Shown in pieces: positions 10,446 through 44,463 of a DNA stretch of 64,000 nucleotides. The DNA is taken from the NCBI RefSeq assembly GCF_023055435.1, contig NW_025964112.1:41664001-41728000 (forward strand). The letters run 5' to 3'. Under the pieces are notes generated by a model. The model saw nothing but the letters and a program-made list of their open reading frames with translations, ran no database searches and had not been told where the DNA came from. Within the stretch, counting starts at the first letter, position 1; each line of letters starts with the position of its first letter. Source of the stretch: Haliotis rufescens. Its lineage: Eukaryota. Made by a program: the position numbers and the translations under genes.

Positions 10446-11164
10446 CTGTGAGTGAGTTCAGTAATCTCACTGTATGTACATTTAATGTGGGATCAGAGAG
10501 AAATTAGTATTCAAACCCTGATCATGTGGCCTCTGAGAAATGCAGCACCTCTCACCACTTGGCCACCTGTGCCCCCCACCACAATCCCTCAAATGAGCTG
10601 AATTTTCACAAAGTCTTGTTTTCTGTCATGGCATGCTTTTCAAATCATCAAATTAAATTAACTTCAATAGAAAAATGCAATGGCTTTTAACCTCTAAACC
10701 AAATGAACTAAAACATTTTCAGCTTAAATGTAAATACTTTATCATCATTTACAGTTATCAAGAGCAAGATAATAGGCAAAATGTGCTTAACAGTGCCTCA
10801 AAACACATTACTTTTGTATTCTCAAGTTCCTGTATCAAATCACATCAACTGTGCATAAGCATGGCTTCATAGATAACAGTTAATTCCCTTCACATTTCCT
10901 TGATACAAGTGGGGAGTTTGACATTTATTATATCGGAATAAGTCTTGCCTATCACTTGATTTTCACAGTGGATTAATGCAGTTATGGTGACTGAACTTAA
11001 ATGTGGTATGAGATGAAATGACTGTTTCAAGCAAACATGTTAATTTAACATCTCCCAACAAACACAGAGTAACCACCACATAACCAAACTGTGTAGCAAC
11101 AAGCATTCCTGTGTCTGTCAGAACTAGATGGAGGAATGATATTCTTCTGGGGTCCACTGATGAT

Positions 11165-11905
11165 GTGGGTGGGTGGGGAAGGTGTGTATTGACAGGTTGG
11201 TGGGGCAGGTGTGTATTGACAGGTGGGGAAGGTGTGTATTGATGGGTGGGAGGGGAAGGTGTGTATTGATGGGTGGGAGGGGCAGGTGTGTATTGGTTGG
11301 TGGTGGGGTAGGTGTGTATTGACAGGTGGGTGGAACAGGTGTGTATTGACAGGTGGATGGGGCAGGTGTGTATTTACAGGTGGGTGGAGCAGGTGTGTAT
11401 TGACAGGTTGTTGGGGCAGGTGTGTATTGACAGGTGTTTGGGGCAGGTGTGTATTGACAGGTGGGTGGGGCAGGTGTGTATTGACAGGTGGGTTTGGGCA
11501 GGTGTGTATTTACAGGTTGGTGGGGCAGGTGTGTATTGGTAGGTTGGTGGGGCAGGTGTGTATTGACAGGTGGGTGGGGCAGGTGTGTATTGACAGGTGG
11601 GTGGGGCAGGTGTGTATTGACAGGTGGGTGGGACAGGTGTGTATTGGTAGGTTGGTGGGGCATGTTGTATAGGTTTGTGGATGGGGTAGGTGTGTATTGA
11701 CAGGTGGGTGGGACAGGTGTGTATTGACAGGCGGATGGGTCAGGTGTGTATTGACTGGTTATTCCGGCAGGTGTGTATTGGTTGATGGGTGGGGCAGGTG
11801 TATTGGTTCGTGGGTGGGGCAGGTGTGTATTGGTTGATGGGTGGGACAGGTGTATTGGTTGGTGGGTGGGACAGGTGTGTATTGGTTGATGCATGGGGCA
11901 GGTGT
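11165..11905. repeat. G-rich 27-bp minisatellite, about 27 copies (CAGGTGTGTATTGACAGGTGGGTGGGG)
   Basis: Direct inspection. It explains the overlapping repetitive ORFs in the track. Confidence 0.95.
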
Positions 11906-12687
11906 TTTCCGATGCTTCTAAAGTGTAATATATTCATTGGAGGGTAGTAGGTTTGCAAGCCAGGACAGAAATATCCCATGTGTTGAAGACCTTCACATCT
12001 CTCATTACATCAATATGTCTATGTTTTGTTTGTTGTTTAACGCCACACTCAGCAATATTCCAGCTTTATGACGGCAGTCTGTAAACAACCGAGTCTGGAC
12101 CAGACAATCCAGTGATTGACATTCTGCGCATCAATCTACATAATTGGGAAAACCATGAGTCGCATCTTACGACAAGCATTGGTTGCTTCAGACCTATTCT
12201 AATCCAGATCTTCACGGGACGTCATTGTACAAGATGCTGTTTCCTTGACTTATAGTACACTAAAATTCATATGCTTTTTAAAGTAGTTGTTCACAAGGTG
12301 TGTAAACATTAAATGAAAATCCAACAAACAATTCTTAATGTTTCAAAATACCATGACAATCATCTATAAGTATTCAAGGAAAAGGAAGGGAAAAACTATG
12401 GAAATCGAGGCTCTTGTCAGAAAGGTAATAAGGTATTGTCAAGGGTATCAAGGGGGTCATGGCATCAGCTGGGACAAAGGTGTCAGGGGATGTTTTCCAG
12501 GACCAACGGACCTTTGATTAAGGGTTCTGTAGAAAAATAAGGAAGAGGAGCTACAATAAGGACCAACCCACTGCTGGCAAACTGAAATGAACCCTGACCA
12601 CTACATGGTGGATGAGATCTGTAAAGTGATGAGGCTAGGTGTGAGGGTGCAAGCACAGCATCACCACACTTGAGTATTGCCACCTAC

Positions 12688-14838: not shown

Positions 14839-15257
14839 GTGAGGTGAGGTGAAATGGGGTTAAACGTCGTGTCCAAGATTATTGCNNNNNNNNNNNNNNN
14901 NNNNNNNNNNNNNNNNNNNNNNNNNNNNNNNNNNNNNNNNNNNNNNNNNNNNNNNNNNNNNNNNNNNNNNNNNNNNNNNNNNNNNNNNNNNNNNNNNNNN
15001 NNNNNNNNNNNNNNNNNNNNNNNNNNNACTGATGCCGATTTATAGTGCTAGCCCACTGAGATACCATGCCGCAGTTTAACATGAATACCTCAGACTCCGA
15101 GCCGTCCAGTCCTTGCTTTAACCCCTTTATCCGGAGCGCCAGACAGGGTAACAACAAGTACCATATTTTAACGTCTTTTGGTATGACGCGTCCGGGGATC
15201 AAACCCCGGACCTTACGATCTCCGGGCGGACGCTCTACCACTAGACCACGGAGGCGG
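14839..15257 (-). mobile_element. SINE family C inserted into a 14-bp minisatellite and containing an N gap. Older or partial copies at about 38770-38880, 42850-43060 and 47094-47415
   Basis: Near-identical to the 52645 copy; flanked by TGCAAGTATGTAG on both sides. Confidence 0.88.
14886..15027. other. Assembly gap (142 N) inside SINE C
   Basis: Run of N. The matching segment of the intact copy (52688-52747) is 60 bp and contains a (TG)n tract. Confidence 0.99.
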
Positions 15258-18200
15258 TGCAAGTATGTAGATGCAAGTATGTAGATGCAAGTATGTAGAT
15301 GCAAGTATGTATATGCAAGTATGTATATGCAAGTATGTATCTGCAAGTATGTACATGCAAGTATGTATCTGCAAGTATGTATATGCAAGTATGTATATGC
15401 AAGTATGTACATGCAAGTATGTACATGCAAGTATGTATCTGCAAGTATGTACATGCAAGTATGTATATGCAAGTGTGTACCATACAGAGATTATTACCTT
15501 CATGTGTTTCCGTATGATATATATCATATATTAGAATACAAATTGTATTAAGCGAACTATTGGTGAGCATAAGACACATTATTTATTCCTGATATTTGAT
15601 ATTTATGACACAGAAACTCACAAGGGTAATAATTTCTTTATCATATATTGCTATTCTTCCAATAATTCATGTTTAAGCAGCAATGTCACTCGAAGTAACT
15701 TTAGAAACTGTTTATGAATAAAGTGTTTGAGTGAAATGACCCCACTTATCATATATAGTATCAAATGTCATGCAGCCATACACATCAGGAAACCCTATCA
15801 AAACTTATTGGGCATGTTATTCAATAATTTATTGAGAAAGCAGATATTGCATGGGAGCTAAAACAGTAGTTCTTGACCTCATTTGCATATTTATCTATCA
15901 TGCCTCCCAGTATATTTGACTGGTATATTGCATCGATGATACAATCCATTATTGGTCGCATTACGTGCCATTAAAAACATTTATATGACCACTGTTTTTT
16001 TCCATCATACATATAAAATCAGATGTTCTGCTTTTCACCGAGTCAATCATAATCATGGATAGACACAATGGGTCATATCCATCTATATGTAGTCCACAGC
16101 TCGTTTCAGACTAGTGGTTTAGTAAATTGATTAGATGAGGGATATAACAACTAGCCTGCCAAGATTGTTACTAGTCTCGGACAAAGTCAACCCTGTACCA
16201 GCAATAGCGATCAGCTGCACCGAAGTGCAACGCTTAGAGTTATTATTATTTTAAATATATTTAGTAAAAGCTGCAACTAATTTAGCATGATATTGGAATA
16301 TATTATTCCTGATAAAAAAATAGTTTCAGATACAATTTGTCCTGATCCTTGCATCAAAATCTTTTAAAGTTATATCATTGGGTAAGTTTTAACCAAATTA
16401 GCGTTCGATTCCAAGAAAAACGTGTGTACAGCTGATTGCTTTTTCCGGCTTTGTTTACGAGAAAATACACAAGGGAATCTTAATCTCTGCATGTAAAACA
16501 ATGCCAAGCATTTTTTTCTGTGAATAATTTTTTTTTTTAATTTCTCCAAAATACTGTATCTGCTAGAGGGGTTGCGGACCATACTCAAGAAAATATGGTA
16601 ACTTGTATTTAGCTGTGATTAGCAAACACAAAGTGTGGAGAAAGGAAACAACCTTCTGTGAAGGATGTCCTGTGACAAAACAATGATGAACTGTCTATAT
16701 GTTAATGTTAAATGTCATGAAGTCATGTGATGATATGAAATTACTGATCATAATAAATAAAAAAACAAACAACTTAAAATCCAAGTTAAACACAAAATGA
16801 AACTTAAATCAGAGGCCATATGAGATGACCTAAACCAAATCTTGGATCATGACTTGAATTGTCAAATTATTTCTTTAACAAATATTACATCCACAACAAA
16901 CACAAATGATAAACAAAAGCATGCAACATTACAAAAGCTCAACACAAATAAAATATATTAAATAAAAGACAGTCATACGCACAAAAGGTTGTTCTTATTC
17001 ATCAATAAATGATGATTTACTATGGACTGAAGGCCATTCACTGAGTGAGTGAGTGAGTGAGTGAGTGAGTGATATTCATGATCATATTCACATTATATAC
17101 ATAAAACATAAACAATCTTATCAGGGTGAGCTAGATTATATACTACTTAAAAAATGTTAAGGAACACCCAATTCTATCATATTACTATAGCTAATCTGTC
17201 ATGCCAAGACAGATTTACTATACTAATATGAAAGTCAGGTGTTCATTTACTTCTTTATAGTAGTATATTATTGCTTTAATTTTGTTGTAATGTTTCAGTA
17301 TATAATTGAATTATCATTATGAAATAGTTGGTGAGTGAGTGAGTGAGTTGAAATGAAATGAAATACAAGGACTAAAATATCGACCAAGGTGAAAACAATG
17401 GTGACATTCAATACGTGTTTCTATTATTATCAGTTGACATGAGCAATGTCATAACAAACTTATGTAATGTGCTAGTTAGGCCACAACAAACTCTACTCTA
17501 CTCTACCCAGTGAAATGAGAACTGACTGGACATTATCTTTCATTTTAGAAGACCTCAATTGATTAATTTTGGAATAAACTGACTAATACATTTTTGAAAG
17601 TGAGTGAATGTTGTTTCATGCTAAAAGTCTGCAAATACATGTAATTAAATCAGTCAGTGCGTGAGTATGGTTTGAAGCCGTTTTTAGCAATATCACGTCA
17701 ATATCACGGCAAGGGACATCGGGAATTAGTCTACAAGGAAAAGTCACTGGTCCTCCCTCACCCAAGAAAATCAGACTGATGTTAATTTGAAACCATGTGG
17801 TACGAGCGACATATTCAGTACTTTTGGCTACATTCACCAGTTATATATTTTTTTGTCTCAATGTCAGAAAAAACGTACCACTCAGTTCTAGCATGAGTGC
17901 TTTACAAAGTCCTGAGTTTTCTATACAGCCGGAACTTATTCAGTAGAAGCAACTGATTTGTTGTGGCCCAAGTAGTGATATTAATAACGTTCATGTTTGA
18001 TGTTATACCCTGTTAAGACAAACTAAAGTTTGTATCCAAATGTTACAGTTGATGAGTGAGTGTTACAAATATGTCCATATCTCCATGTTACGGTTTATAT
18101 CAAACTCAACATGTTATACAGTGTTATAGCATATTTTAACAAGTTAATATCAAACATGTTATTATCTTCTGTATTGACCAACTCTGACACACCATGTAAC

Positions 18201-20206: not shown

Positions 20207-21354
20207 TGATTTAGAGTAAGCTACTTCAACTACTCCTGGACATCCCTAAAGAACCCAACTTTTAAGTTTATTTATATACTACTCAAAAGAAGTAAAAGAA
20301 TGCCAGATTCTTTGATATTACCATAGTCAATCTGTCATGGCATGACAGAATAGCTACAGTGGCATGAAAGAATCAGTGTTCTTTAACGTCTTTGAGTAGT
20401 ATATATTCAGCACCTTGTGGTCTGTACTGACTTAAGGACCATGTCCAAAATACCTGTGTAGTTGATAAGTATACACAATACACGACTGTCGTGTCTGGCA
20501 AGACAGTCTGCACACAATATTAGTGGACAACAACAACAACACAGCAGACAGATATCATCTGTAACAACTGGTTCCAAGAGTCATGCAGCACCAAGTTGTG
20601 GATGCCATTAATAGTGGTAAGTTACAAATTCACATCATAAAATGAAATCTAAATCATTTCCTACGAAAACCAATCTTTCAGGTACTTCCACATGTTGAGT
20701 TAATTGAAGTGTTATCTAAGTATAACTCCATACTGAACATGCACACATAGCTAAATTAACTAGGTAACCACACATAGCATTAGAAAATACTTTCATTTGA
20801 TGCATTAGAAAATACTTTCATTTGATGTAAGGGAAAACAAATCTAACATATAACAAAAAAACACAAACCTTTCAATCAATATTTAGAGTCACCTCTTTAA
20901 AAACACAATTCTACTTTACTAACTTTCTGCAATCCATACTCTAAACATTTTCAACAAAAACAATGTCTTACTTATTCCTAACCTTTAGAGGATATTATCG
21001 GGTTTAGATAATGGATCAAGCAAGAAGATAACTTCCTTAAGTAATACTTCAGAATGAACACATACCCTAAAACCCTCCATATCCACTGCTTACATAATTT
21101 TGATCATGTATTTGATAAAATCTACAATCATACTAAAATTTGTTTCTAGTCCAGTTGTAATAAGACAATCAAGACCTAAGATTTTGAAAAACATTTTTCC
21201 TATTGTCAAAAAACATTTATGACCTATAAATTTACAAATGGTTCCATAATTACATTAACAAGATCTCAGAAATAAGATTCATGAAGATGGGATAAACTTC
21301 CACTACTGTTGTTGAGACTACTGTTGTTGTGACTGTTGTTATTGTTGTTCTTAC

Positions 21355-21465
21355 CTTCTCCTTTAGAGTTGTAGACATGGGTGGGTTGGTTTTGTGGGGG
21401 AGTAGCCACGGCGGTGGGCACATAGTCAGTTATGCTACCTGGGTTCTTGTGACCACGCCTGCGAG
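21355..21465 (-). CDS. Lasp: 111-nt linker exon ARRRGHKNPGSITDYVPTAVATPPQNQPTHVYNSKGE(G)
   Basis: CCTCAACAG acceptor, AAG|GTAAGA donor, phase 1-1, NPGSITDY motif. Confidence 0.88.
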
Positions 21466-21536
21466 CTGTTGAGGGTACATGCAAAACACAAACAAGCATA
21501 GCAGAACCCAAACTAAACATTGTAGCAAAATGGTAG

Positions 21537-23085
21537 ATGATAGGATCAGAAGTGATGGTACTCCACCCAATGGGAGGGGATATAGGATCAGTAGTGATGG
21601 TCCTCCACCCAATGGGAGGGGATAGGATCAGTAGTGTTGGTACTCCACCCAATGGTAGGGGATATAGGATCAGAAGTGATGGTGCTCCACCCAATGGGAG
21701 GGGATATAGGATCAGTAGTGATGGTGCTCCACCCAATGGGAGGGAACATAGGATCAGTAGTGATGGTGCTACACCCAATGGGAGGGGATATAGGGTCAGT
21801 AGTGATGGTAAACCTCCCAATGGTAGGGGATATAGGATCAGTAGTGATGGTACACCACCCAATGGGAGGGGATATAGAATCAGTAGTGATGGTACACCAC
21901 CCAATGGTAGGGGATATAGGATCAGTAGTGATGGTACTCCACCCAATGGGAGGAAATATAGGATCAGTAGTGATGGTGCTACACCCAATGGAAGGGGATA
22001 TAGGATCGGAAGTGATAGTAAACCACCCAATAGTAGATGATAGGATCAGTAGTGATGGTACTCCACCCAATGGTAGGGGATATAGGATCAGTAGTGATGG
22101 TAAACCTCCCAATGGAAGGGGATATAGGATCGGAAGTGATAGTAAACCACCCAATAGTAGATGATAGGATCAGTAGTGATGGTACACCACCCACTGGGAG
22201 GGGATATAGGATCAGTAGTGATGGTAAACCACCCAATGGTAGATGATAGGATCAGTAGTGATGGTGCTACACCCAATGGGAGGGGATATAGGATCAGTAG
22301 TGATGGTACACCACCCAATTGGAGGGGATATAGGATCAGTAGTGATGGTAAACCACCCAAAGGTAGATTATAGGATCAGTAGTGATGGTACTCCACCCAA
22401 TGATAGGGAATATAGGATCAGTAGTGATGGTGCTCCACCCACTTGGGGGAATATAGGATCAGTAGTGATGGTGCTCCACCCAATGGTAGGGGATATAGGA
22501 TCAGTAGTGAAGGTACTCCACCCCATGGTAGGGGATATAGGATCAGTAGTGATGGTACTCCACCCAATGGGAGGGAATATAGGATCAGTAGTGATGGTGC
22601 TCCACCCAATGGTAGGGGATATAGGATCAGTAGTGATGGTACACGACCCAATGGGAGGGGATGTAGGATCAGTAGTGATGGTACTCTACCCAATGGTAGG
22701 GGATATAGGATCAGTAGTGATGGTACTCTACCCAATGGTAGGGGATATAGGATCAGTAGTGATGGTGCTCCACCCAATGGGAGGGGATATAGGATCAGTA
22801 GTGATGGTACACCACCCAATGGAAGGGGATATAGGAACAGTAGTGATAGTAAACCACCCAATGGTAGATGATAGGATCAGTAGTGATGGTGCTACACCCA
22901 ATGGTAGGGGATATAGGATCAGTAGTGATAGTAAACCACCCAATTGGAGGGGATATAGGATCAGTAGTGATGGTAAACCACCCAATGGTAGATGATAGGA
23001 TCAGTAGTGATGGTACACCACCCAATGGTAGGGGATATAGGATCAGTAGTGATGGTACTCCTCCCAATGGTATGGCATATAGGAT
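21537..23085. repeat. 42-bp minisatellite with 40-bp variants, about 37 copies
   Basis: Unit GATATAGGATCAGTAGTGATGGTRCWCCACCCAATGGKAGGG. Confidence 0.96.
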
Positions 23086-23950
23086 AAGACTCCAAAAAGG
23101 GCATTGAAGATTTAAGATCAGTAGGGATAGAACAACCTAATGATACAGAATATCGAGTCAGCACCAATCATATTGCACCATCAGTGGGCAGATTGTGGGT
23201 CTTAGTCACAACTAACACAAGACATCAAATAATGTTATCTTAAAAGTGTTAAAACTTCACAATCCAAACGCATTCCTTAAGTAACAGGCACAGTTACTGA
23301 AGCAACGTTTAAAGATAGAGAAGAAGATATTTAAATAACATCATCAAAAGAACATTTCAAAGATGGCTTGACCAGGTTAGTATGAGAGATTAGACAGTTT
23401 CACACAGAGCCACGACTGACAAATGTTAATTGCACTCATATCATTGTTATGTAAGGAACATGTTCTGATTCGATCAGTGTTTATTTATAGGAAAAGACAA
23501 AAGTGTTGAAATTTATAACATGTTCCAGTGTCGGTCAAAGGAAACATAACATACTGTTTCAAATTTTGACTTCTCTGCAACATTAATCATTTATTTTCAC
23601 ATCCTTCATAAACTCTACACTGACCCAGGGTATTCTGTCGGAGATCAGAGGAGGGGGTATGAGATGACAAGAATTAAACAGCAACTTAAAATGGCAGTAT
23701 TTAAGCTGATGCAGCAATAACAGCATAGTGTATGACATGTAACACCATGGACCGATGAGGCGGATACAGTGAACTCCACAACAGTGTGCCTTGTTCAGCA
23801 TCATATAAGGACTGGGGATAATGGATCAGTACTGATCATACTGACCATCTTTACAAGACACTTTTAAGCAATGTACCAGGTAGCCCTTGCTATTTAGTCT
23901 ATGTTGCTGGCATAAGTCGACACTTTTCACAAAAGACAAATGTCATGATA

Positions 23951-24041: not shown

Positions 24042-24533
24042 AAATGTCATGATAATTAAGACATTTGTACCTGACTGGAGTTCACTGTTTGAGATTTTGA
24101 AGATGAACGTGAATTGGGTTCAGAAAGGAAACTGAGGACACAGAACTAAATAAATGATGAGCTGCTTGAAAATGCTACTGGCTGAGACTTTAACTGACCT
24201 GTAGGCCAGGAGATTGACCAGATCTTCAAGAGGGGCTGTGGATGAGTTAATTGTGTTTAATGCTGCTTTAACAACATTTCAGTAATATCAAACTTCAACA
24301 TAATGTTGGAGAAAAAAGTAATGTAGGTCTCAGAGATCACCCTTAATCAAACCCTCAAGCACGAGTATGGTGCAGACAAACCAAAAATTATTACCAGGGC
24401 GATTGAGGGATTCAAACCACTAAACTCATAAGCATGGGGAACAGAGAACCTACTTTTCCTAATTATCCCCCAAAATGTCAAGGAATGAAAACAGAACCTC
24501 CAACCAGTTTCAGAGTTTTCTGTTTGAGTTTAC

Positions 24534-24717
24534 CTGCAAAGTTATCCGTCTCCTCGTTAGGTCGATTCTGTTCCATCCTTGCCTTCTCCTGGAGTGTGTT
24601 GTGGTAGGCCACATTACTCACAACCTGCATGTTTTTCTTGAGGCGCTGGGTTTCTGGGTCGTCAGCCACAGACATTTTTTTGCCTTTTTCTTTTTCAAAG
24701 TTTTCATGGTACTTAAT
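24534..24717 (-). CDS. Lasp: 184-nt exon, last canonical Lasp nebulin repeat: IKYHENFEKEKGKKMSVADDPETQRLKKNMQVVSNVAYHNTLQEKARMEQNRPNEETDNF(A)
   Basis: CCTACTTTTCAG acceptor, CAG|GTAAAC donor, phase 0-1. KYHExFEK...DDPET...SNVAYH is typical of invertebrate Lasp. Confidence 0.95.
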
Positions 24718-26010
24718 CTGAAAAGTAGGAAACGACAAAAATGAAGGAAAAGATAAAAGGACAAGTTATCTGCTGAAACACTGAATTTGTACATTATTTG
24801 AAACGAGAAAAAAATTCAAAGTGATTTGAAAGACAAGTTTTAACAGTGAACAACATGAATTTCACAGCTTTATCATAAATATTCAAGATACTTATTGAGC
24901 AATCACAAAGGATTCTCAGTAATAATACCAAATGTTTCTGACAACTGAAGTCTGAAAAGTCTGAAAAGTACATGGTACTAGGATTCTGAAAAGGAACAGT
25001 GGTCATTATTAGGAGAAGAAAATGTCAGTCTTGAACAGGACTGAAAGAAAGAAAAACTCACGCACATTAGAAAGAAAAAGAAAATATATTAAATATGGTG
25101 TACATAAACTGTGTACACTTGTAGAAAATTGCAAGAAAGAAATCAGGTTCTCAAAATATACAATTATAGATGCATTATTTCACATGAGTTTGCCAGCAGA
25201 AGACCAAAACAATAATATCTCTAAATATTTTGTTGTTGGAAGACTCTCATCAAGTCAGCAAGATGTATGATAATCACATAAATAATAACAAAATACCACT
25301 TGTACTCAGCTAATAAACACAAATTAATATAGTGGTGGCACAGTCACATTAAAAGTGTGTCATATCTACATGTAGTATCCTAGCAACTAGACATAATGAC
25401 CAATCAGAGCAAGGCTTTTAAAAGCAACATAATGCCATATGCATTTTTATACAGGATTTGCACAGCCTATGTGTTCTGATACACAAATCTGTATAGTTCA
25501 ATCTTTCCACAGAATTAGAATCCCCATTTGGCATCTGTTCATTAAAGACCTAAACGCTCCTTAAAATATATTGGGGTACCTTGTAAATCAATGTGTCCTA
25601 TCCACAAAGAGTTGTGTATCTCAATACTCATCACTGTACACTTAAATACCTACCACATATTGAGGGAAGGGGTGGGGCGGAGAAAATCAGAAGCAGGTTT
25701 GAAAAACAATTACTCAATTTGACACAGGACACAATAGAATGTTTACTTAATTTATGTTTTTCTTTTAAAAATATGTTTCATCACAATGCTCCGTTGAGGA
25801 CATGTGCAGAAGGAAAATTCCACTGTGACATGTACTACTCAAAGAAGTTGAAACACCAGATTCATATCATGACGGATTAACTATAGTCATATGAAAACAT
25901 TTGTGTTCTTTAATTTCTTTGAGTAGTACATTTAGACAATTGCTTTGGATGGGAATCTCCGCCCGAACCCCATCCCTATGATAAATATTGACGAGTCCCT
26001 CAGGACATAC

Positions 26011-26805
26011 CGTAGCAGAGGTCAGTTGTCCATACAGGAGGCAGATAACAAGTCCAGCCAGTCATTGCTGCTCCACAGCCTCACTTGGAGGCTCTTGTGG
26101 AAGCTCTTCAGCTGGTTCTTGAGGAACCTTGGTCACAGGTTCTTCTGCAACCTTTTTAGCTGGTTCTTGAGGAACCTCGGTCACAGGTTCTTCTGCAACC
26201 TGTTTAGCTGGTTCTTGAGGAAGCTCTTCAGCTGGTTCTTGAGGAAGCTCTTCAGCTGGTTCTTGAGGAACCTTGTTCACAGGTTCTTCTGCAACCTTTT
26301 CAGCTGGTTCTTGTGCAACCTTCTTAGCTGGTTCTTGAGGAACCTCTTTAACTGGTTCTTGAGGAAGCTCTTTAACTGGTTCTTGAGGAACCTTGTTCAC
26401 AGGTTCTTCTGCAACCTTTTCAGCTGGTTCTTGTGCAATCTTCTTAGCTGGTTCTTCTGCAACCTTCTTAGCTGGTTCTTCTGCAACCTTCTTAGCTGGT
26501 TCTTCTGCAACCTTCTTAGCTGGTTCTTGAGGAACCTCTTTAACTGGTTCTTGAGGAACCTCTTTAACTGGTTCTTGAGGAACCGCTTTAACTGGTTTCT
26601 GTGAAACTACTTTAGTAGGCGCTTGAGAGAGCTGTTTGGGTGGCTCCTCAGGAAGTTGTTTGGGAGATTGTTTGGGCACCTGTTTAGGAGCTCCAAGTTT
26701 GGGTTCTTGTAGTAATTGGGTTGGGGATTGAGGGGTGGGGGATTGAGGAGTGGGGGATTGAGGAGTGGGAGATTGAGGTGTGGGTTGGGAGGGTTGTGGA
26801 GCCAC
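26011..26805 (-). CDS. Lasp: Large PEVK-like exon: (PTPQS)n followed by about 21 8-aa [QE]EP[AV]KK[VL][AP]-type repeats, with an in-frame TGA at 26064-26062
   Basis: TTCTTGCTTACAG acceptor directly before the ORF's first codon (phase 0), 247 open codons, and an ACG|GTATGT donor at 26010. Length 795 nt is a multiple of 3. Confidence 0.75.
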
Positions 26806-29803
26806 CTGTAAGCAAGAAGCCTACAAGTATTAAGACTTGTGTTTTCTTGTATTCCATCTCCCATCAATTATTTTCTTGACTTTAACTTTATCACATCAAT
26901 TTGCTCTTCAAGGAACTCTAATCAATGACTTCGGAAAAATTGAGTTCACTTAAGATTTTCTTATTATACTATTGGTTGGTTACTGTTCATTGCTTAATGT
27001 TTTTCATTTCCTACATCTGTATCAAATATACAATAAGCAGACACATCAATATTAGTAGCAACCAATCAATATTCTGTTATTGTATTTCACAGATCTACTC
27101 AGATCTACCAAAACTACACATCATGCAACAGTGAAGAAGCGGATGTTTTTGTTAATGTTAGATACTTATTTTGAGCTAAATCCCCAGTAGGAATTGTCAA
27201 CCAAATTTTGTTTCCAATGAAGAATTTTTTAGGTCCAGTAATAGTTTCTGGAAGGCTTGTGATGGTACCGGGTCACTTTATAGAGTTCGAAATTAAGCAT
27301 GAAAGTCAAGGGGTCCTTGTCACAACTCTCATGTTAAAAGTTGAAGATTTAGAATCAAATACTATCGGAGCATACCTCAAGAATTCCACCGCCTTTATTT
27401 CAAACATTGTTTTACATATGTCCACTCCGACAGATCAAGTCACAATATCCCATTAAGTCTGGTTGCCAGGGATAACACACCAAGTTTGGTTTAAAACTAT
27501 ATTTTGGCATGTTCAAATAACAGCATTGATGGAGTATAATAACGAATCACAGGACTGTCGTCGAACTCCATCAATTTGATTCAATATATATTCTGATGCT
27601 ACCCTTAATCACTCCAAAATTAATAGGACAGTATATATTCCAGAGCACTGCAATTAAAAAATGGGCGAGTGTGGTTTTACGCTGCTCTTAACAATATTCC
27701 ACCCATATTACAATACAACTTACCGATCCCGCTAGTCGCCTCTTACAACAAACATTGTCGCCTTTTAAGGCAAGCATTAAGGATTTTGATGCAATGATGG
27801 GAATTTTTTTTATCTGAAACTATCTTATCAGGGATAATATATTCCTATATCGCGTAATTTCAGATGCAGCTTTTACTATGTTTCAGTGTTCAATGCAGGT
27901 TAATACAACAGAAGTGCTGACAACAGCAGGGAAACACATGAATCACAAACCAACTGACAATGCAGTAAGAAACAAATGTTAAAATTAACAAATAATCTCT
28001 ATTTTAAACTTCTGGAGTGAAGTATAGTCACTGATTCAGCAACCATGGAAAAATCACCATGAAATGTAAACCTAGACTTGCATAAGTCTCTGAAGAAATA
28101 TGTTTTAATTTAAATTATAATTCCTAAATAATACGAAAAAGTTGTCCCTTTAAAAGACTGGAAACATGTTTTTGTACTAGAATGGCAACCTTAGAACTGT
28201 TGACTTATCTAGACTTGTGTTTTATACATATAAGGATAGAATTACTGTCCATGCAGTTACAATTCAGTACAGCCTTAGAGCAAGGCTAATGAACACCTAT
28301 CAATTTATATCACAAAATCCTTCACTTCAGAAAGAAAAGAACACACATAAGCTTTTTTTTTCTTTCAAAGTATTATAAACAAAAGAAAGCACACAAACGT
28401 ATCCACAATTAATGCCATCAGTCATTTCTTTAGTGCTGGAAAACAACAAAGACTTGCTGGTAAGTGACGCCAAGAAAAAGGCATGGTGCCAAAATCACAC
28501 TGCACTTTGATGACGGCCATGATACACTGACAGTCAGACATCCCCAACATACATAACAAAAAAACATTAATAACCTTTCCAAAATAAGCAGTATTTCAGG
28601 TTGGCAATATCACTATTTATTACATGGCTAACAAGGGCTCGTTTGGCCAGATCTCACTGAAAAATCTGTAAACAAATGTAACCAAAATTCTGTAAATCAT
28701 TGTACAATAATTTCAGACTTAGGGATGCCATATCAGATTGTTCCAAAGATACACACAAACAACCACAAGTTAGTGAGTTATCGCCCGATGGTAGCGAAAT
28801 GTTGTTTTTTATCAGGCACCCACCAACTCTACCCCTTTGACCACAAACCATCATGCCCCAGCAAAGTGTGAAGCAAATCACAAGTCTTGGTCCGATGTTT
28901 TGAAACATTCAAGGCCTCAGCAAAGTTTTCAAAATGTTTTTTTGTAGACATGGGGAGGACATTTCCAAATCTGATGTATCAGTGACAAAAATGATGTTCA
29001 ATGCAATTCCCTTTTTCCATTACACCAAATGTTTCCATGTTGTTTTTTCAGGTGAATAATTGACTTGCCTTTGCATGTGTTTGTGATAGGAGTCACCAGT
29101 GAGGCAGGATACGCACACGTTTTTGCGAAAACCTGGTGTCATCACTATTTGATAGTGATTCATAAACATATGCTCGTGATAGAATTGTATAATGGAATCC
29201 ACTTTTAGACATTTCTTATTAATATGGAAAGGGTTTCAGTATTTTATTTGCAAGATGATTTTGTAAGAAGATATTTGTTATGTATTGGCAGCAAGATTCT
29301 TTCAAAGATTCCTGTAGTATGGCAATACATTTTTTTACATTCAGCATCAGTATCATCTCCGTGTTCGATGCTGTGTTTATTGCTCATCGCTGCAGGGACA
29401 CTGCATTCAAACAAGGTACAACACTAAGTGCTGACATCAGCAAATTAGGTTAAAAGAATGTAAAAACAAATCCTGAAAAAACAGTTTTCTGTCTCATGTT
29501 GCTGCCATGGAGTAAACAATTAACAAAACATTCACACCGCCTCCCAAATACCAATATTACCAGATCAGTTTTCAATTGCTGAATCAGTCATGAAAACGAG
29601 CTTTTCTCATTCAGTGTTTGAGAAAAGGGTTATTTACCCATGAAGTACAACCACCTCAATATACCCCACTGCAGTCAGATCCCTCCTATCAAGGCCACTC
29701 TTCACATAACAATGTTAGGGCATTGTTAATAACGCAACAACAATCAGAGAATGCAGCCCCAGCATGATGCCTGCACGATGCCAACAATGGTCGCCCATCC
29801 TAC

Positions 29804-29908
29804 CCCCTTCAGAATCTGTTTGTTCCCCTGGTGGCGCCTCATCTCCACAGTGTCGGCCACTTGAGTGTATTTGCTCTTGGACATCTCAAAGTCTTTGTGA
29901 TAGTCTAC
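29804..29908 (-). CDS. Lasp: Nebulin-repeat exon VDYHKDFEMSKSKYTQVADTVEMRRHQGNKQILKG
   Basis: 105 nt, CAG acceptor, GTAGGA donor, phase 0-0, YHxDFE...AD pattern. Confidence 0.93.
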
Positions 29909-30502
29909 CTGATAGGACGCATACAAGACGGTAGAAATTTTGCATTGCTTGTCATCTTAAATTCCTTTAATATTTGACAATATTTTGACGATTTTCAGAT
30001 ATAGAAACAAATTGTTTGCATAGTACTTTATGGATTACAAGTGAAAAATCCTTATTTCATTGATACAGTTTAGGAGTAAATTGTGGAGTGAGTGAGTGAG
30101 TTTGGTTCAACACTGTTTCAACAGTATTTCAGTTATAGCATGGCATGTCAGTGTGATGTGGGAGCAAGTCTAAATGACACAGCTCAAATACGTTCAGCAC
30201 TTGGGCGAGACCCACAAGCACAGGTATGGTGCTGACAAACCTAGGTTTCAGGGCAGATCAGGATTTGGGATTTGAACCCATGATCAGAATATCCTCCAAG
30301 CAACTCTTTACAGGGACCACTGTGCCACCCATGCTTCAAACTCCAGTCATGCTATTTGCATAAAAAATGGCATTTCAATATATTCTATTACTACTTACGG
30401 ATTAGAACTTGTCTTATAAACTTTTAACTCCAGAAATCTGTTTACATCAGCAGAAGACAGATAAATTATATTTTTGCGTCTAATTAACAGCAGTAATTAT
30501 AC

Positions 30503-30607
30503 CTCACTAGCCAGTTTCTGATTGGTCATACTTCGTTTGAAATCGAGGGCATCAGCTGGCATGTTCACAGACATCTTGCCCTTCTCAAATTCACTGTGGT
30601 ACTCCAC
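30503..30607 (-). CDS. Lasp: Nebulin-repeat exon VEYHSEFEKGKMSVNMPADALDFKRSMTNQKLASE
   Basis: 105 nt, TAG acceptor, GTATAA donor, phase 0-0. Confidence 0.92.
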
Positions 30608-32584: not shown

Positions 32585-34537
32585 TTCAACAATTAGCTTC
32601 AGGGCAACCTGGATCTGATTGGTTAACAAGATAATACATTTCTCCAACAACTACCTTCAGGGCAACCTGGATCTGATTGGTTAACAAGATGATATATTCT
32701 CCAACAACTACCTTCAGGGAAACCTGGATCTGATTGGTTAACAAGATGATATATTCTCCAACAACTACCTTCAGGGAAACCTGGATCGGATTGGTTAACA
32801 AGATGATATATTCTCCAACAACTACCTTCAGGGAAACCTGGATCGGAATGGTTAACAAGATGATATATTCTCCAACAACTACCTTCAGGGCAACCTGGAT
32901 CTGATTGGTTAACAAGATGATATATTCTCCAACAACTACCTTCAGGGAAACCTGGATCGGATTGGTTAACAAGATGATATATTCTCCAACAACTACCTTC
33001 AGGGAAACCTGGATCGGAATGGTTAACAAGATGATATATTCTCCAACAACTACCTTCAGGGTGACCTGGATCTGATTGGTTAACAAGATGATATATTCTC
33101 CAACAACTACCTTCAGGGCAACCTGGATCTGATTGGTTAACAAGATAATACATTTATCCAACAACTACCATCAGGGCAACCTGGATCGGATTGGTTAACA
33201 AGATGATATATTCTCCAACAACTACCTTCAGGGCAACCTGGATCGGATTCGTTAACAAGATGATATATTCTCCAACAACTACCTTCAGGGTGACCTGGAT
33301 CTGATTGGTTAACAAGATGTTATATTCTCCAACAACTACCTTCAGGGCAACCTGGATCTGATTGGTTAACAAGATAATACATTTATCCAACAACTACCTT
33401 CAGGGCAACCTGGATCGGATTGGTTAACAAGATGATATATTCTCCAACAACTACCTTCAGGGTGACCTGGATCTGATTGGTTAACAAGATGATATATTCT
33501 CCAACAACTACCTTCAGGGAAACCTGGATCGGATTGGTTAACAAGATAATACATTTCTCCAACAACTACCTTCAGGGAAACCTGGATCGGATTGGTTAAC
33601 AAGATGATATATTCTCCAACAACTACCTTCAGGGAAACCTGGATCGGATTGGTTAACAAGATGATATATTTTCCAACAACTACCTTCAGGGTGACCTGCA
33701 TCTGATTGGTTAACAAGATGATATATTCTCCAACAACTACCTTCAGGGCAACCTGGATCTGATTGGTTAACAAGATAATACATTTATCCAACAACTACCT
33801 TCAGGGCAACCTGGATCGGATTGGTTAACAAGATGATATATTCTCCAACAACTACCTTCAGGGCAACCTGGATCGGATTCGTTAACAAGATGATATATTC
33901 TCCAACAACTACCTTCAGGGTGACCTGGATCTGATTGGTTAACAAGATGTTATATTCTCCAACAACTACCTTCAGGGCAACCTGGATCTGATTGGTTAAC
34001 AAGATAATACATTTATCCAACAACTACCTTCAGGGCAACCTGGATCGGATTGGTTAACAAGATGATATATTCTCCAACAACTACCTTCAGGGTGACCTGG
34101 ATCTGATTGGTTAACAAGATGATATATTTATCCAACAACTACCATCAGGGCAACCTGGATCTGATTGGTTAACAAGATGATATATTCTCCAACAACTACC
34201 TTCAGGGCAACCTGGATCGGATTGGTTAACAAGATGATATATTCTCCAACAACTACCTTCAGGGTGACCTGCATCTGATTGGTTAACAAGATGATATATT
34301 CTCCAACAACTTCCTTCAGGGTGACCTTGATCTGACTGGTCAACAAGATGATATATTCTCCAACAACTACATTCAGGGCGACCTGGATCTGTCTGGTCAA
34401 CAAGATGATATATTCTCCAACAACTACCTTCAGGGTGACCTGGATCTGACTGGTCAACAAGATGATATATTCTCCAACAACTACCTTCAGGGTGACCTGG
34501 ATCTGATTGGTTAACAAGATGATATATTCTCCAACAA
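32585..34537. repeat. 57-bp minisatellite with occasional 58-bp units, about 34 copies
   Basis: Unit CCAACAACTACCTTCAGGGCAACCTGGATCTGATTGGTTAACAAGATGATATATTCT; starts at 32644, 32701 and 32758. Confidence 0.96.
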
Positions 34538-35076
34538 TGCCATCCTGCCAGAAGAAGGTTCCAAGGGCAATCCTGGAGCCATTGGATATAACCTAATATA
34601 TATCCAATCATGCACATATATTCTCATCCCTGTATTAATGTTAATGACAACTGAGCTACATAACAGATTATTAATAATGGTGTTAAGACACAGAGTATAC
34701 ATGTTTAGTATGTGACCTACACTACCTTAAAAAGAACTTCTATCAAATGTTAGCAAACAAAATATATGAAAGGAAGGAAAGAAACAAATAAGTAACAAAG
34801 AAATCAGATTAACTCAAAATGAACAAACAAATATGTACCTCTTCTGAAAATAAAGATAAGTATTTCAAAAGAAAGATTTGAGCAAAAGATTCAAAATAGG
34901 TTCTGAAAGTCCAAAAGAAATCAAGTTTGACACAAAAATGCAAACAAAAGATTCAGGTTTTAATTTTCAAGATATGCACACGTAACAAAACTATTTGGCA
35001 ATCCAGGGTATTATGTGATGTCAGTCTGATGCGAGGGTTGGCTACATTCAATCACTTGCCGTATGTACGATCATAC

Positions 35077-43246: not shown

Positions 43247-43519
43247 TCATACAACACAGCAGGCAGTATGGACTCTTAAGCTACAATGTTGTCAAAAGAC
43301 TAAGCGCCAATGTCTGGTGCCTATTTTCTGCCATGAAGACATCGTAACTAATACCATGACATTGTTTCAGTATAGTTAGTGTCGTCAGTAACTGCTCAAA
43401 TGGTATACATTCTAAAACTAGCACCCCAAGAAAGAATCATTAAACCTTGTGGGTAGGACTGTCAATTAGCCGAGCCTAGATCCCCTTTAAATTAGAACAA
43501 AGTGACATAACTATCAGTG

Positions 43520-44015
43520 ACAAATATAACACAAATGGTTCCTATTCCAAATACAGCTCTGATGATTCCTCATATTTCTGATACACCTCAGATGGTTCCA
43601 TATATTCCAAATACAATTCAGATGGTTCCTCATATTCCAAATACTGCTCTGATAGTTCTCCATATTCCAATTACAGCTCTGATGGTTTTCCATAGTCCAA
43701 ATACAGCTCTGATGGTTCTCCACATTCCAAATACAGCTCTGATGGTTCCATATATTCCAAATACAGCTCTGATGGTTCTCCACATTCCAAATACAGCTCT
43801 TATGGTTCTCCATATTCCAAATACAGCTCTGATGGTTCTCCATATTCCAAATACAGCTCTGATGGTTCTCCATATTCCAAATACAGCTCTGATGGTTCTC
43901 CACATTCCACATACAGCTCTGATGGTTCTCCATATTCCACATACAGCTCTGATGGTTTTCCATAGTCCACATACAGCTCTGATGGTTTCTCATTTTTCCA
44001 AATACAGCTCAGATT
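43520..44015. repeat. 30-bp minisatellite, about 16 copies (GATGGTTCTCCATATTCCAAATACAGCTCT)
   Basis: Direct inspection. Confidence 0.95.
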
Positions 44016-44463
44016 ATATCCTCATACACATATAAATGACCAAAGAAGGTTCAGCACGAAGGACAAAATATTTTTCCTTGGTCTCAAACCAGAACATTAG
44101 ACACTGTGCAGCAAACTCAGAGTAAAAGTATAAATAAAAGGAACTAGACCATCCAAAGATTTGTTTCCAACATCTTCAAACATATTTTACACTTTGGCTA
44201 AATGCGGATTTAACACATAAAACATATGCTGGGAATCAAACCATTATTCCATGAATGAACACATTATCCGCTGGGCTACAGTCACATCCACAAAGCATTG
44301 CTTTGAAGCCTGTATAACTGTTGTATGGCTGAATATGACAAGTTGCAGTATATTTGCAGCGAATAATGGACACTGGCTTTGCTATTAGCAAGCATGCTAC
44401 TATCTATGCGGCTATCGCCGAGATGCTGCACTAGTACAATACAACAGCATTATTTACCCATAC

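Follow-up and report, generated by a model that had tools for sequence, protein, structure and literature searches.

A stop-bearing alternative cassette exon with a P/E/V/K-rich reading frame in a Lasp-type gene of the abalone Haliotis rufescens

A Lasp-type gene of the abalone Haliotis rufescens contains a 795-nt exon that is joined to its neighbours on both sides in spliced RNA and whose reading frame, after 247 P/E/V/K-rich codons, reaches a TGA 51 nt before the donor site. This TGA is present in the mature spliced RNA, and there is hardly any doubt about the structure of the mRNA itself. As to its meaning, the exon is probably a stop-bearing alternative cassette exon, the inclusion of which would give rise to an isoform with a P/E/V/K-rich tail and a spliced 3′-UTR and lacking repeat 2 as well as the SH3 domain. 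The stretch of DNA analysed here (the window) comprises 64,000 nt of RefSeq assembly GCF_023055435.1 (contig NW_025964112.1, forward-strand positions 41,664,001 to 41,728,000); coordinates are window positions unless indicated otherwise, and the gene is read on the minus strand.

Structure of the Cassette Exon

Both the sequence and the two contig joints described below delimit the exon as 26011-26805 on the minus strand, between an acceptor AG at 26807-26806 (...cttacAG/GTGGCT, with a polypyrimidine tract in front) and a donor GT at 26010-26009. Its length is a multiple of three and both flanking exons are in phase 0, so that the frame is preserved and remains open into the repeat-2 exon that follows. 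The coding part (26065-26805) is open in the frame set by the preceding nebulin-repeat exon (29908-29804), and P, E, V, K, A and Q account for 88% of its 247 codons. It contains four copies of a 15-nt SPTPQ unit (26723-26784), a degenerate stretch enriched in P, K and Q, and an array (26093-26597) in which a 24-nt unit occurs 21 times within a 120-nt higher-order repeat. Nine codons past the end of this array lies the in-frame TGA (26062-26064, context CAA TGA CTG), followed by a 51-nt segment (26011-26061) whose 17 open codons read LAGLVICLLYGQLTSAT (GRAVY +1.53) and run up to the donor ACG/GTATGT. The first-pass annotation, which was made from the letters of the window, had described this layout (phase 0, TGA, 17 open codons, GTATGT donor and 795 nt), and every detail was recovered at the same positions.

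One alternative donor, CAA/GTGAGG at 26085/26084, is located upstream of the TGA; it would produce a 721-nt exon with a broken frame and is not among the joints listed. Weak phase-0 AAG/GTT sites that recur within the repeat may serve as minor donors.

With regard to polyadenylation signals, AATAAA does not occur on the minus strand before 23590, in agreement with the earlier statement that none is found in approximately 1 kb downstream, and an ATTAAA is present at 25909-25914 in the downstream intron. This ATTAAA is overlapped by a 23-nt inverted repeat (25830-25852 and 25909-25931, 91% complementary, 56-nt loop) located within a dispersed repeat whose intronic start is close to 25934; the element at approximately 25880-25934 has dozens of genomic copies with 85-92% identity. 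Very high-copy dispersed repeats were also observed in the introns at 27579-27765 and 28888-29261, as well as at 25709-25934, and the summed contig depth in a DNA run (X15, see below) reached 320,000 over 27579-27765 and 270,000-450,000 over 28888-29261, compared to a background of approximately 34.

The tail of the cassette exon is single-copy in the 1.33-Gb assembly. A genome self-search revealed no second copy of it (haplotig, paralogue or retrocopy) in the species' own genome, the other matches being internal repeats of the exon and the dispersed repeat; therefore, the joints of the cassette exon do not derive from a retrocopy.

Inclusion of the Exon in Spliced RNA

Four public contig sets (X1, X3, X4 and X15) were placed on window positions 24400-30000 (5,601 letters). 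X15 shows a flat depth of approximately 34 over exons and introns and is DNA, from a related organism B. The records are silent on the type of the other three, and X1, X3 and X4 were treated as RNA on the grounds that their exon depth is far greater than their intron depth and that they contain joints missing from X15. X1 comes from an individual other than the window animal, and X3, X4 and X15 represent the related organisms B and C, which are 1-3% diverged.

The upstream joint of the cassette exon (29804>26805) was detected in X1, X3 and X4 and the downstream joint (26011>24717) in X1 and X4, neither being present in the DNA run X15. Both appear as CT..AC on the plus strand, i.e., GT..AG on the minus strand. 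The first-pass annotation had predicted splicing in frame to the last nebulin-repeat exon and had proposed these two junctions as a check; the former is borne out by the phase-0 joint 26011>24717 in X1 and X4, and the latter by the presence of both junctions in RNA-like runs only. An X1 contig of 147 nt (record 3) starts at 26128, crosses the TGA and the 17 codons behind it, and ends 29 nt inside exon 24717; it has 0 differences from the window, in a data set whose introns differ from the window by 0.5-2.5%. Hence, the TGA is neither an assembly error nor a private allele of the reference animal. At consensus level, the contig carries an unbranched A at the TGA.

The isoform is not rare. Relative to the depth of exon 24534-24717, the depth of the joint 26011>24717 was 48/228 in X1 and 240/357 in X4 (approximately 20-67%, contig depth being a rough measure), and the intron downstream of the cassette exon had a depth of 12.5 in X1 and approximately 5 in X4. 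Since the joint lies well above the downstream intron, the donor behind the stop is used efficiently. A composite terminal exon with polyadenylation after the ATTAAA at 25909 was considered and rejected, because the spliced joint exceeds the depth of the downstream intron approximately 4-fold in X1 and 50-fold in X4. An unused donor at 26010, polyadenylation downstream and a sense codon in place of the TGA had been named beforehand as findings that would speak against a recoding switch; none of them was observed, the codon having been read in X1 only.

Several length differences were found in the repeats of the coding part. X3 and X15 lack 15 nt (one SPTPQ unit) at 26718, an in-frame change in repeat number, and X4 shows a probable 48-nt (two-unit) contraction at approximately 26110-26158 that also keeps the frame. 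One of two X15 contigs (depth 28/62) has a 1-nt deletion at 26749 within the SPTPQ repeats, which might reflect a frameshift allele or, next to the 15-nt deletion, an artefact of the alignment.

The Host Gene and Its Isoforms

Profile matches and motif scans confirmed the locus, as judged from its sequence, as a Lasp-type gene with the predicted order LIM domain, nebulin repeat 1, optional 105-nt nebulin exons, cassette exon, repeat 2, linker and SH3 domain. A partial LIM match (PF00412, profile positions 18-52, 31 bits with a cut-off of 22.9) lies on the same strand at G000:C334:41734269-41734373, approximately 4 kb upstream of repeat 1, and is assigned to the gene by position and strand. In a motif scan, the nebulin motif was recognised in sixteen exons from 63992 to 24613, namely fifteen full 105-nt phase-0 exons and the first 105 nt of exon 24717, and the Pfam Nebulin family (PF00880, cut-off 20.1 bits) matched exon 24717 with 26.4 bits and exon 35941 with 23.2 bits. 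At the other end, the SH3 open frame with the normal stop codon of the gene occupies 1398-1592 on the minus strand (Pfam SH3_1, PF00018, E = 2.9e-16).

Immediately upstream of the cassette exon, contigs support the chain 30607-30503 > 29908-29804 > 26805. The first of these exons (30503-30607, minus strand, phase 0-0) has the form AG + 105 nt + GT, is open and carries the nebulin motif; a loose end of X4 behind 29910 maps to 30505-30534 and identifies it as the upstream partner of exon 29908. The second (29804-29908, minus strand) comprises exactly 35 codons (VDYHKDFEMSK...QILKG), has a weak Pfam Nebulin match and is spliced to the cassette exon, which is placed after the last optional nebulin exon and before repeat 2. 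The repeat-2 exon (24534-24717, minus strand) starts with ATT AAG TAC in phase 0 and reads IKYHENFEKEK...; the exon that follows 24534 begins at 21465. The latter position lies at the edge of a minisatellite of approximately 1.9 kb (21269-23167), in which several frames are open on both strands. Tandem-repeat arrays at 32589-34623, 43511-44032, 11048-11933 and 15216-15582, in introns of the gene, likewise contain long spurious open frames.

Exon 24717 serves as acceptor not only for the cassette exon but also for a repeat-1 exon outside the window. In an X1 contig, it is joined to 29 letters found at G000:C334:41730283-41730311 (window-equivalent 66283-66311), 2.3 kb beyond the upper edge of the window; these letters close an exon that reads ...HTAVADTPESRRIAENTKIQSN. 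Judging from the human LASP1 sequence, this ending and the IKYHENFEKEK start of exon 24717 presumably form the canonical repeat 1/repeat 2 pair of Lasp proteins. The gene therefore has an abundant short isoform in which repeat 1 is followed directly by repeat 2 and approximately 41.5 kb, containing the whole optional nebulin array and the cassette exon, is skipped.

Probable Termination at the TGA and the Segment Behind It

According to the interpretation favoured here, inclusion of the cassette exon after the optional nebulin array would lead to termination of translation at the TGA. In the product, a disordered P/E/V/K-rich tail of 247 residues would come after the nebulin repeats, and repeat 2, linker and SH3 would be missing; the 51 nt past the TGA together with all downstream exons would form a long spliced 3′-UTR. 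Skipping of the exon would yield isoforms with SH3, of which the short Lasp with a repeat 1-repeat 2 joint is the one shown. We infer that the exon is translated and that ribosomes stop at the TGA; the truncated protein would then have to be stable and functional, and the exon-included mRNA would largely escape nonsense-mediated decay.

The nature of the sequence around the stop is consistent with this interpretation. Closure of the frame nine codons past the array is expected where the open frame of a stop-free repeat runs into an unselected flank. As the first-pass annotation had cautioned, a 17-codon open stretch can arise by chance: among windows of 17 codons taken from the flanking introns, 33% have no stop (composition models give 0.29-0.59), and hence the open stretch behind the stop is no more than chance would give. 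Combined with a length divisible by three (1/3), the joint chance is approximately 0.1-0.2. The composition changes abruptly at the TGA, with hydropathy shifting from -1.14 before it (where no 17-residue window rises above 0) to +1.53 after it and the P/E/V/K/A/Q content falling from 88% to 24%. The fold of the post-stop sequence was no better than that of shuffled sequences (z = 0.12). Codon usage gave a less uniform picture: the in-frame score of the 51 nt was 0.03 per codon, compared to -0.59 and -0.54 in the other two frames, and this value exceeds that of 92% of the open 51-mers from introns, falls short of that of 96% of true coding windows, and matches that of the exon's own non-repeat part. 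Most likely, the segment represents the first 51 nt of the spliced 3′-UTR. Among the alternatives mentioned by the first-pass annotation was a simple alternative C-terminus whose UTR is spliced, and this is the reading that fits best.

Some observations do not fit easily with a simple stop-bearing cassette exon. At least two exon junctions (26011>24717 and 24534>21465) follow the TGA, and the mRNA is nonetheless abundant; this abundance calls for an explanation, which could be that junction-dependent decay is weak in the lineage or that leaky termination protects the mRNA. The CAA-UGA-C context of the leaky type, the length divisible by three, the open frame into repeat 2 and the codon score of 0.03 are further counterpoints. 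In addition, every annotated Lasp isoform of Drosophila has the SH3 domain, deletion of which impairs localisation and function (PMC4137052), so that an isoform without SH3 would have no precedent in that study.

Competing Explanations

The best-surviving rival is that of a poison exon, inclusion of which would mainly lower the amount of the SH3-containing long isoform via nonsense-mediated decay, the truncated protein having no role. The premature stop upstream of the junctions, which gives the mRNA a 3′-UTR of many exons, is what such an exon should have, and a young, repeat-derived exon for which no homologues were found would also be in keeping with it. However, an efficiently degraded isoform should be rare, and a low steady-state level was not seen, the downstream junction amounting to 21% of the exon depth in X1 and 67% in X4, as far as contig depth, a rough measure, can tell. 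We regard a poison exon as unlikely.

Programmed readthrough of the UGA appears improbable. In this scenario the UGA would be decoded by a regulated share of the ribosomes, which would continue across the exon junction and produce a full-length protein in which the P/E/V/K segment and a 17-residue hydrophobic insert are followed by repeat 2, linker and SH3. The locus would then be a mollusc readthrough site, equally improbable in our judgement, at which termination yields an SH3-less protein with an extensible tail and readthrough across the splice junction places repeat 2, linker and SH3 behind a spring. UGA followed by C is a leaky stop context, a feature that is necessary but far from sufficient for readthrough. 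Use of the post-stop donor, the frame kept into repeat 2, the abundance of the stop-bearing mRNA, and an in-frame codon score above those of both other frames are all compatible with the idea. In flies, some alternative exons have annotated readthrough sites (PMC4528330), and Dunn et al. listed extensions that contain splice junctions (PMC3840789). On the other hand, an open frame together with a length divisible by three is not a rare coincidence, the composition flips at the stop, no stimulatory structure was found behind it, and isoforms with SH3 are already obtainable by exon skipping. In the summary of Jungreis et al. given in PMC4528330, abundant readthrough in animals is believed to be limited to insects and crustaceans. 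Even at a low level, readthrough might protect the abundant mRNA from nonsense-mediated decay.

A nonsense allele that is still segregating, or a nonsense mutation of recent origin, in an otherwise fully coding, in-frame cassette exon is likewise improbable, and we rate it slightly lower than programmed readthrough. Past coding use would explain the length divisible by three and the preserved frame, and the species is highly polymorphic, the runs differing from the window by 0.5-3%. Yet the TGA is found in two independent haplotypes, that of the window and that of the X1 contig with 0 differences, while the introns of X1 differ by 0.5-2.5%; moreover, in a DNA contig of organism B covering 25875-26128 the differences amount to one substitution and two inserted letters, and the change in composition at the stop speaks against uninterrupted coding.

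That the UGA is recoded, either to UGG through A-to-I editing or through insertion of selenocysteine, is extremely improbable, since the only point in its favour is the identity of the codon, the spliced X1 contig is unbranched with A at the site (contigs being insensitive to low-level editing), and selenocysteine in a disordered tail would lack a rationale. No inverted repeat that could form an editing duplex was found over 26062-26064. The SECIS search suggested by the first-pass annotation gave no match in the window at the Rfam gathering score or in 1-2200 at E<=1; the 3′-UTR may extend below window position 1.

Overall, the first-pass interpretation proved right about inclusion of the exon, use of the post-stop donor and the frame into repeat 2. 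The readthrough or editing switch that it had favoured as the mechanism was neither borne out nor refuted: no SECIS element, post-stop structure or inverted repeat at the TGA was found, and X1 reads A at the site. None of the tests lent positive support to readthrough or recoding, and we do not favour it.

Origin of the P/E/V/K-Rich Module

The 247-aa product of the cassette exon has no significant match to a Pfam-A family. An exhaustive search with this product among 1.84 billion representatives returned 551 matches at E<=0.001. The six top matches inspected were unrelated proteins that share only the 8-residue repeat (an RTX protein, a cadherin and a cornifin-like protein among them), none of them titin-like. 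Among the best 150 of the 551 matches, a motif scan revealed no nebulin-repeat motif, and no orthologous exon was found. A word-indexed search of 90% clusters, whose scope was proteins of 136-432 aa and thus excluded longer isoforms, gave four unrelated matches. Its sequence suggests a lineage-specific exon that arose from tandem repeats.

Comparison with Known Systems

The readthrough genes of Drosophila (kelch, headcase, Oamb, CG34377 and others) resemble the abalone locus in that UGA is their commonest stop, that sites occur in alternative exons and that extensions may cross splice junctions (PMC4528330, PMC3840789). They differ from it in being defined by deep conservation of stop and frame or by ribosome footprints, whereas the abalone case is known from sequence and contigs, and molluscs, unlike flies, are not a lineage in which readthrough is known to be common. 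Readthrough, if true, would be notable outside arthropods, but the present evidence does not favour it. Considering that the mRNA is abundant despite its layout, the locus offers a clean natural test case of how molluscs handle a stop located before many exon junctions.

The tail predicted for the truncated isoform is similar to the PEVK segment of titin in its P/E/V/K-rich composition and its short tandem repeats, and it is thus probably disordered and extensible. The resemblance is compositional, there being no Pfam or sequence homology between the two. If the truncated isoform is made, nebulin repeats would be joined to a disordered, titin-PEVK-like tail, a combination of domains for which the nebulin family offers no described example.

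Drosophila Lasp shares with the abalone gene a LIM domain, nebulin repeats, a variable linker and an SH3 domain, and its isoforms are distinguished by alternative exons located around the linker (PMC4137052). However, all four annotated fly isoforms keep both SH3 and repeat 2 (PMC4137052), which the abalone exon would remove. In flies, these two parts are needed for localisation of Lasp and for control of thin-filament length (PMC4137052). If the truncated isoform is made, a single optional exon would switch mollusc Lasp between actin-binding scaffolds with and without SH3.

A close parallel is provided by vertebrate LASP2/NEBL, where one gene encodes both a short protein composed of LIM, few repeats and SH3 and many-repeat isoforms, depending on whether in-frame blocks of single-repeat exons are skipped or included (bioRxiv 10.64898/2026.10.05.756842). 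The abalone repeat 1-repeat 2 joint, which skips approximately 41.5 kb of optional nebulin exons, gives a layout resembling that of lasp-2 and nebulette. The vertebrate isoforms described keep the SH3 domain, and a stop-bearing P/E/V/K cassette exon has not been described among them (bioRxiv 10.64898/2026.10.05.756842). A natural isoform that lacks SH3 and ends in a spring-like tail would be new, yet would fall within a known kind of alternative-splicing switch.
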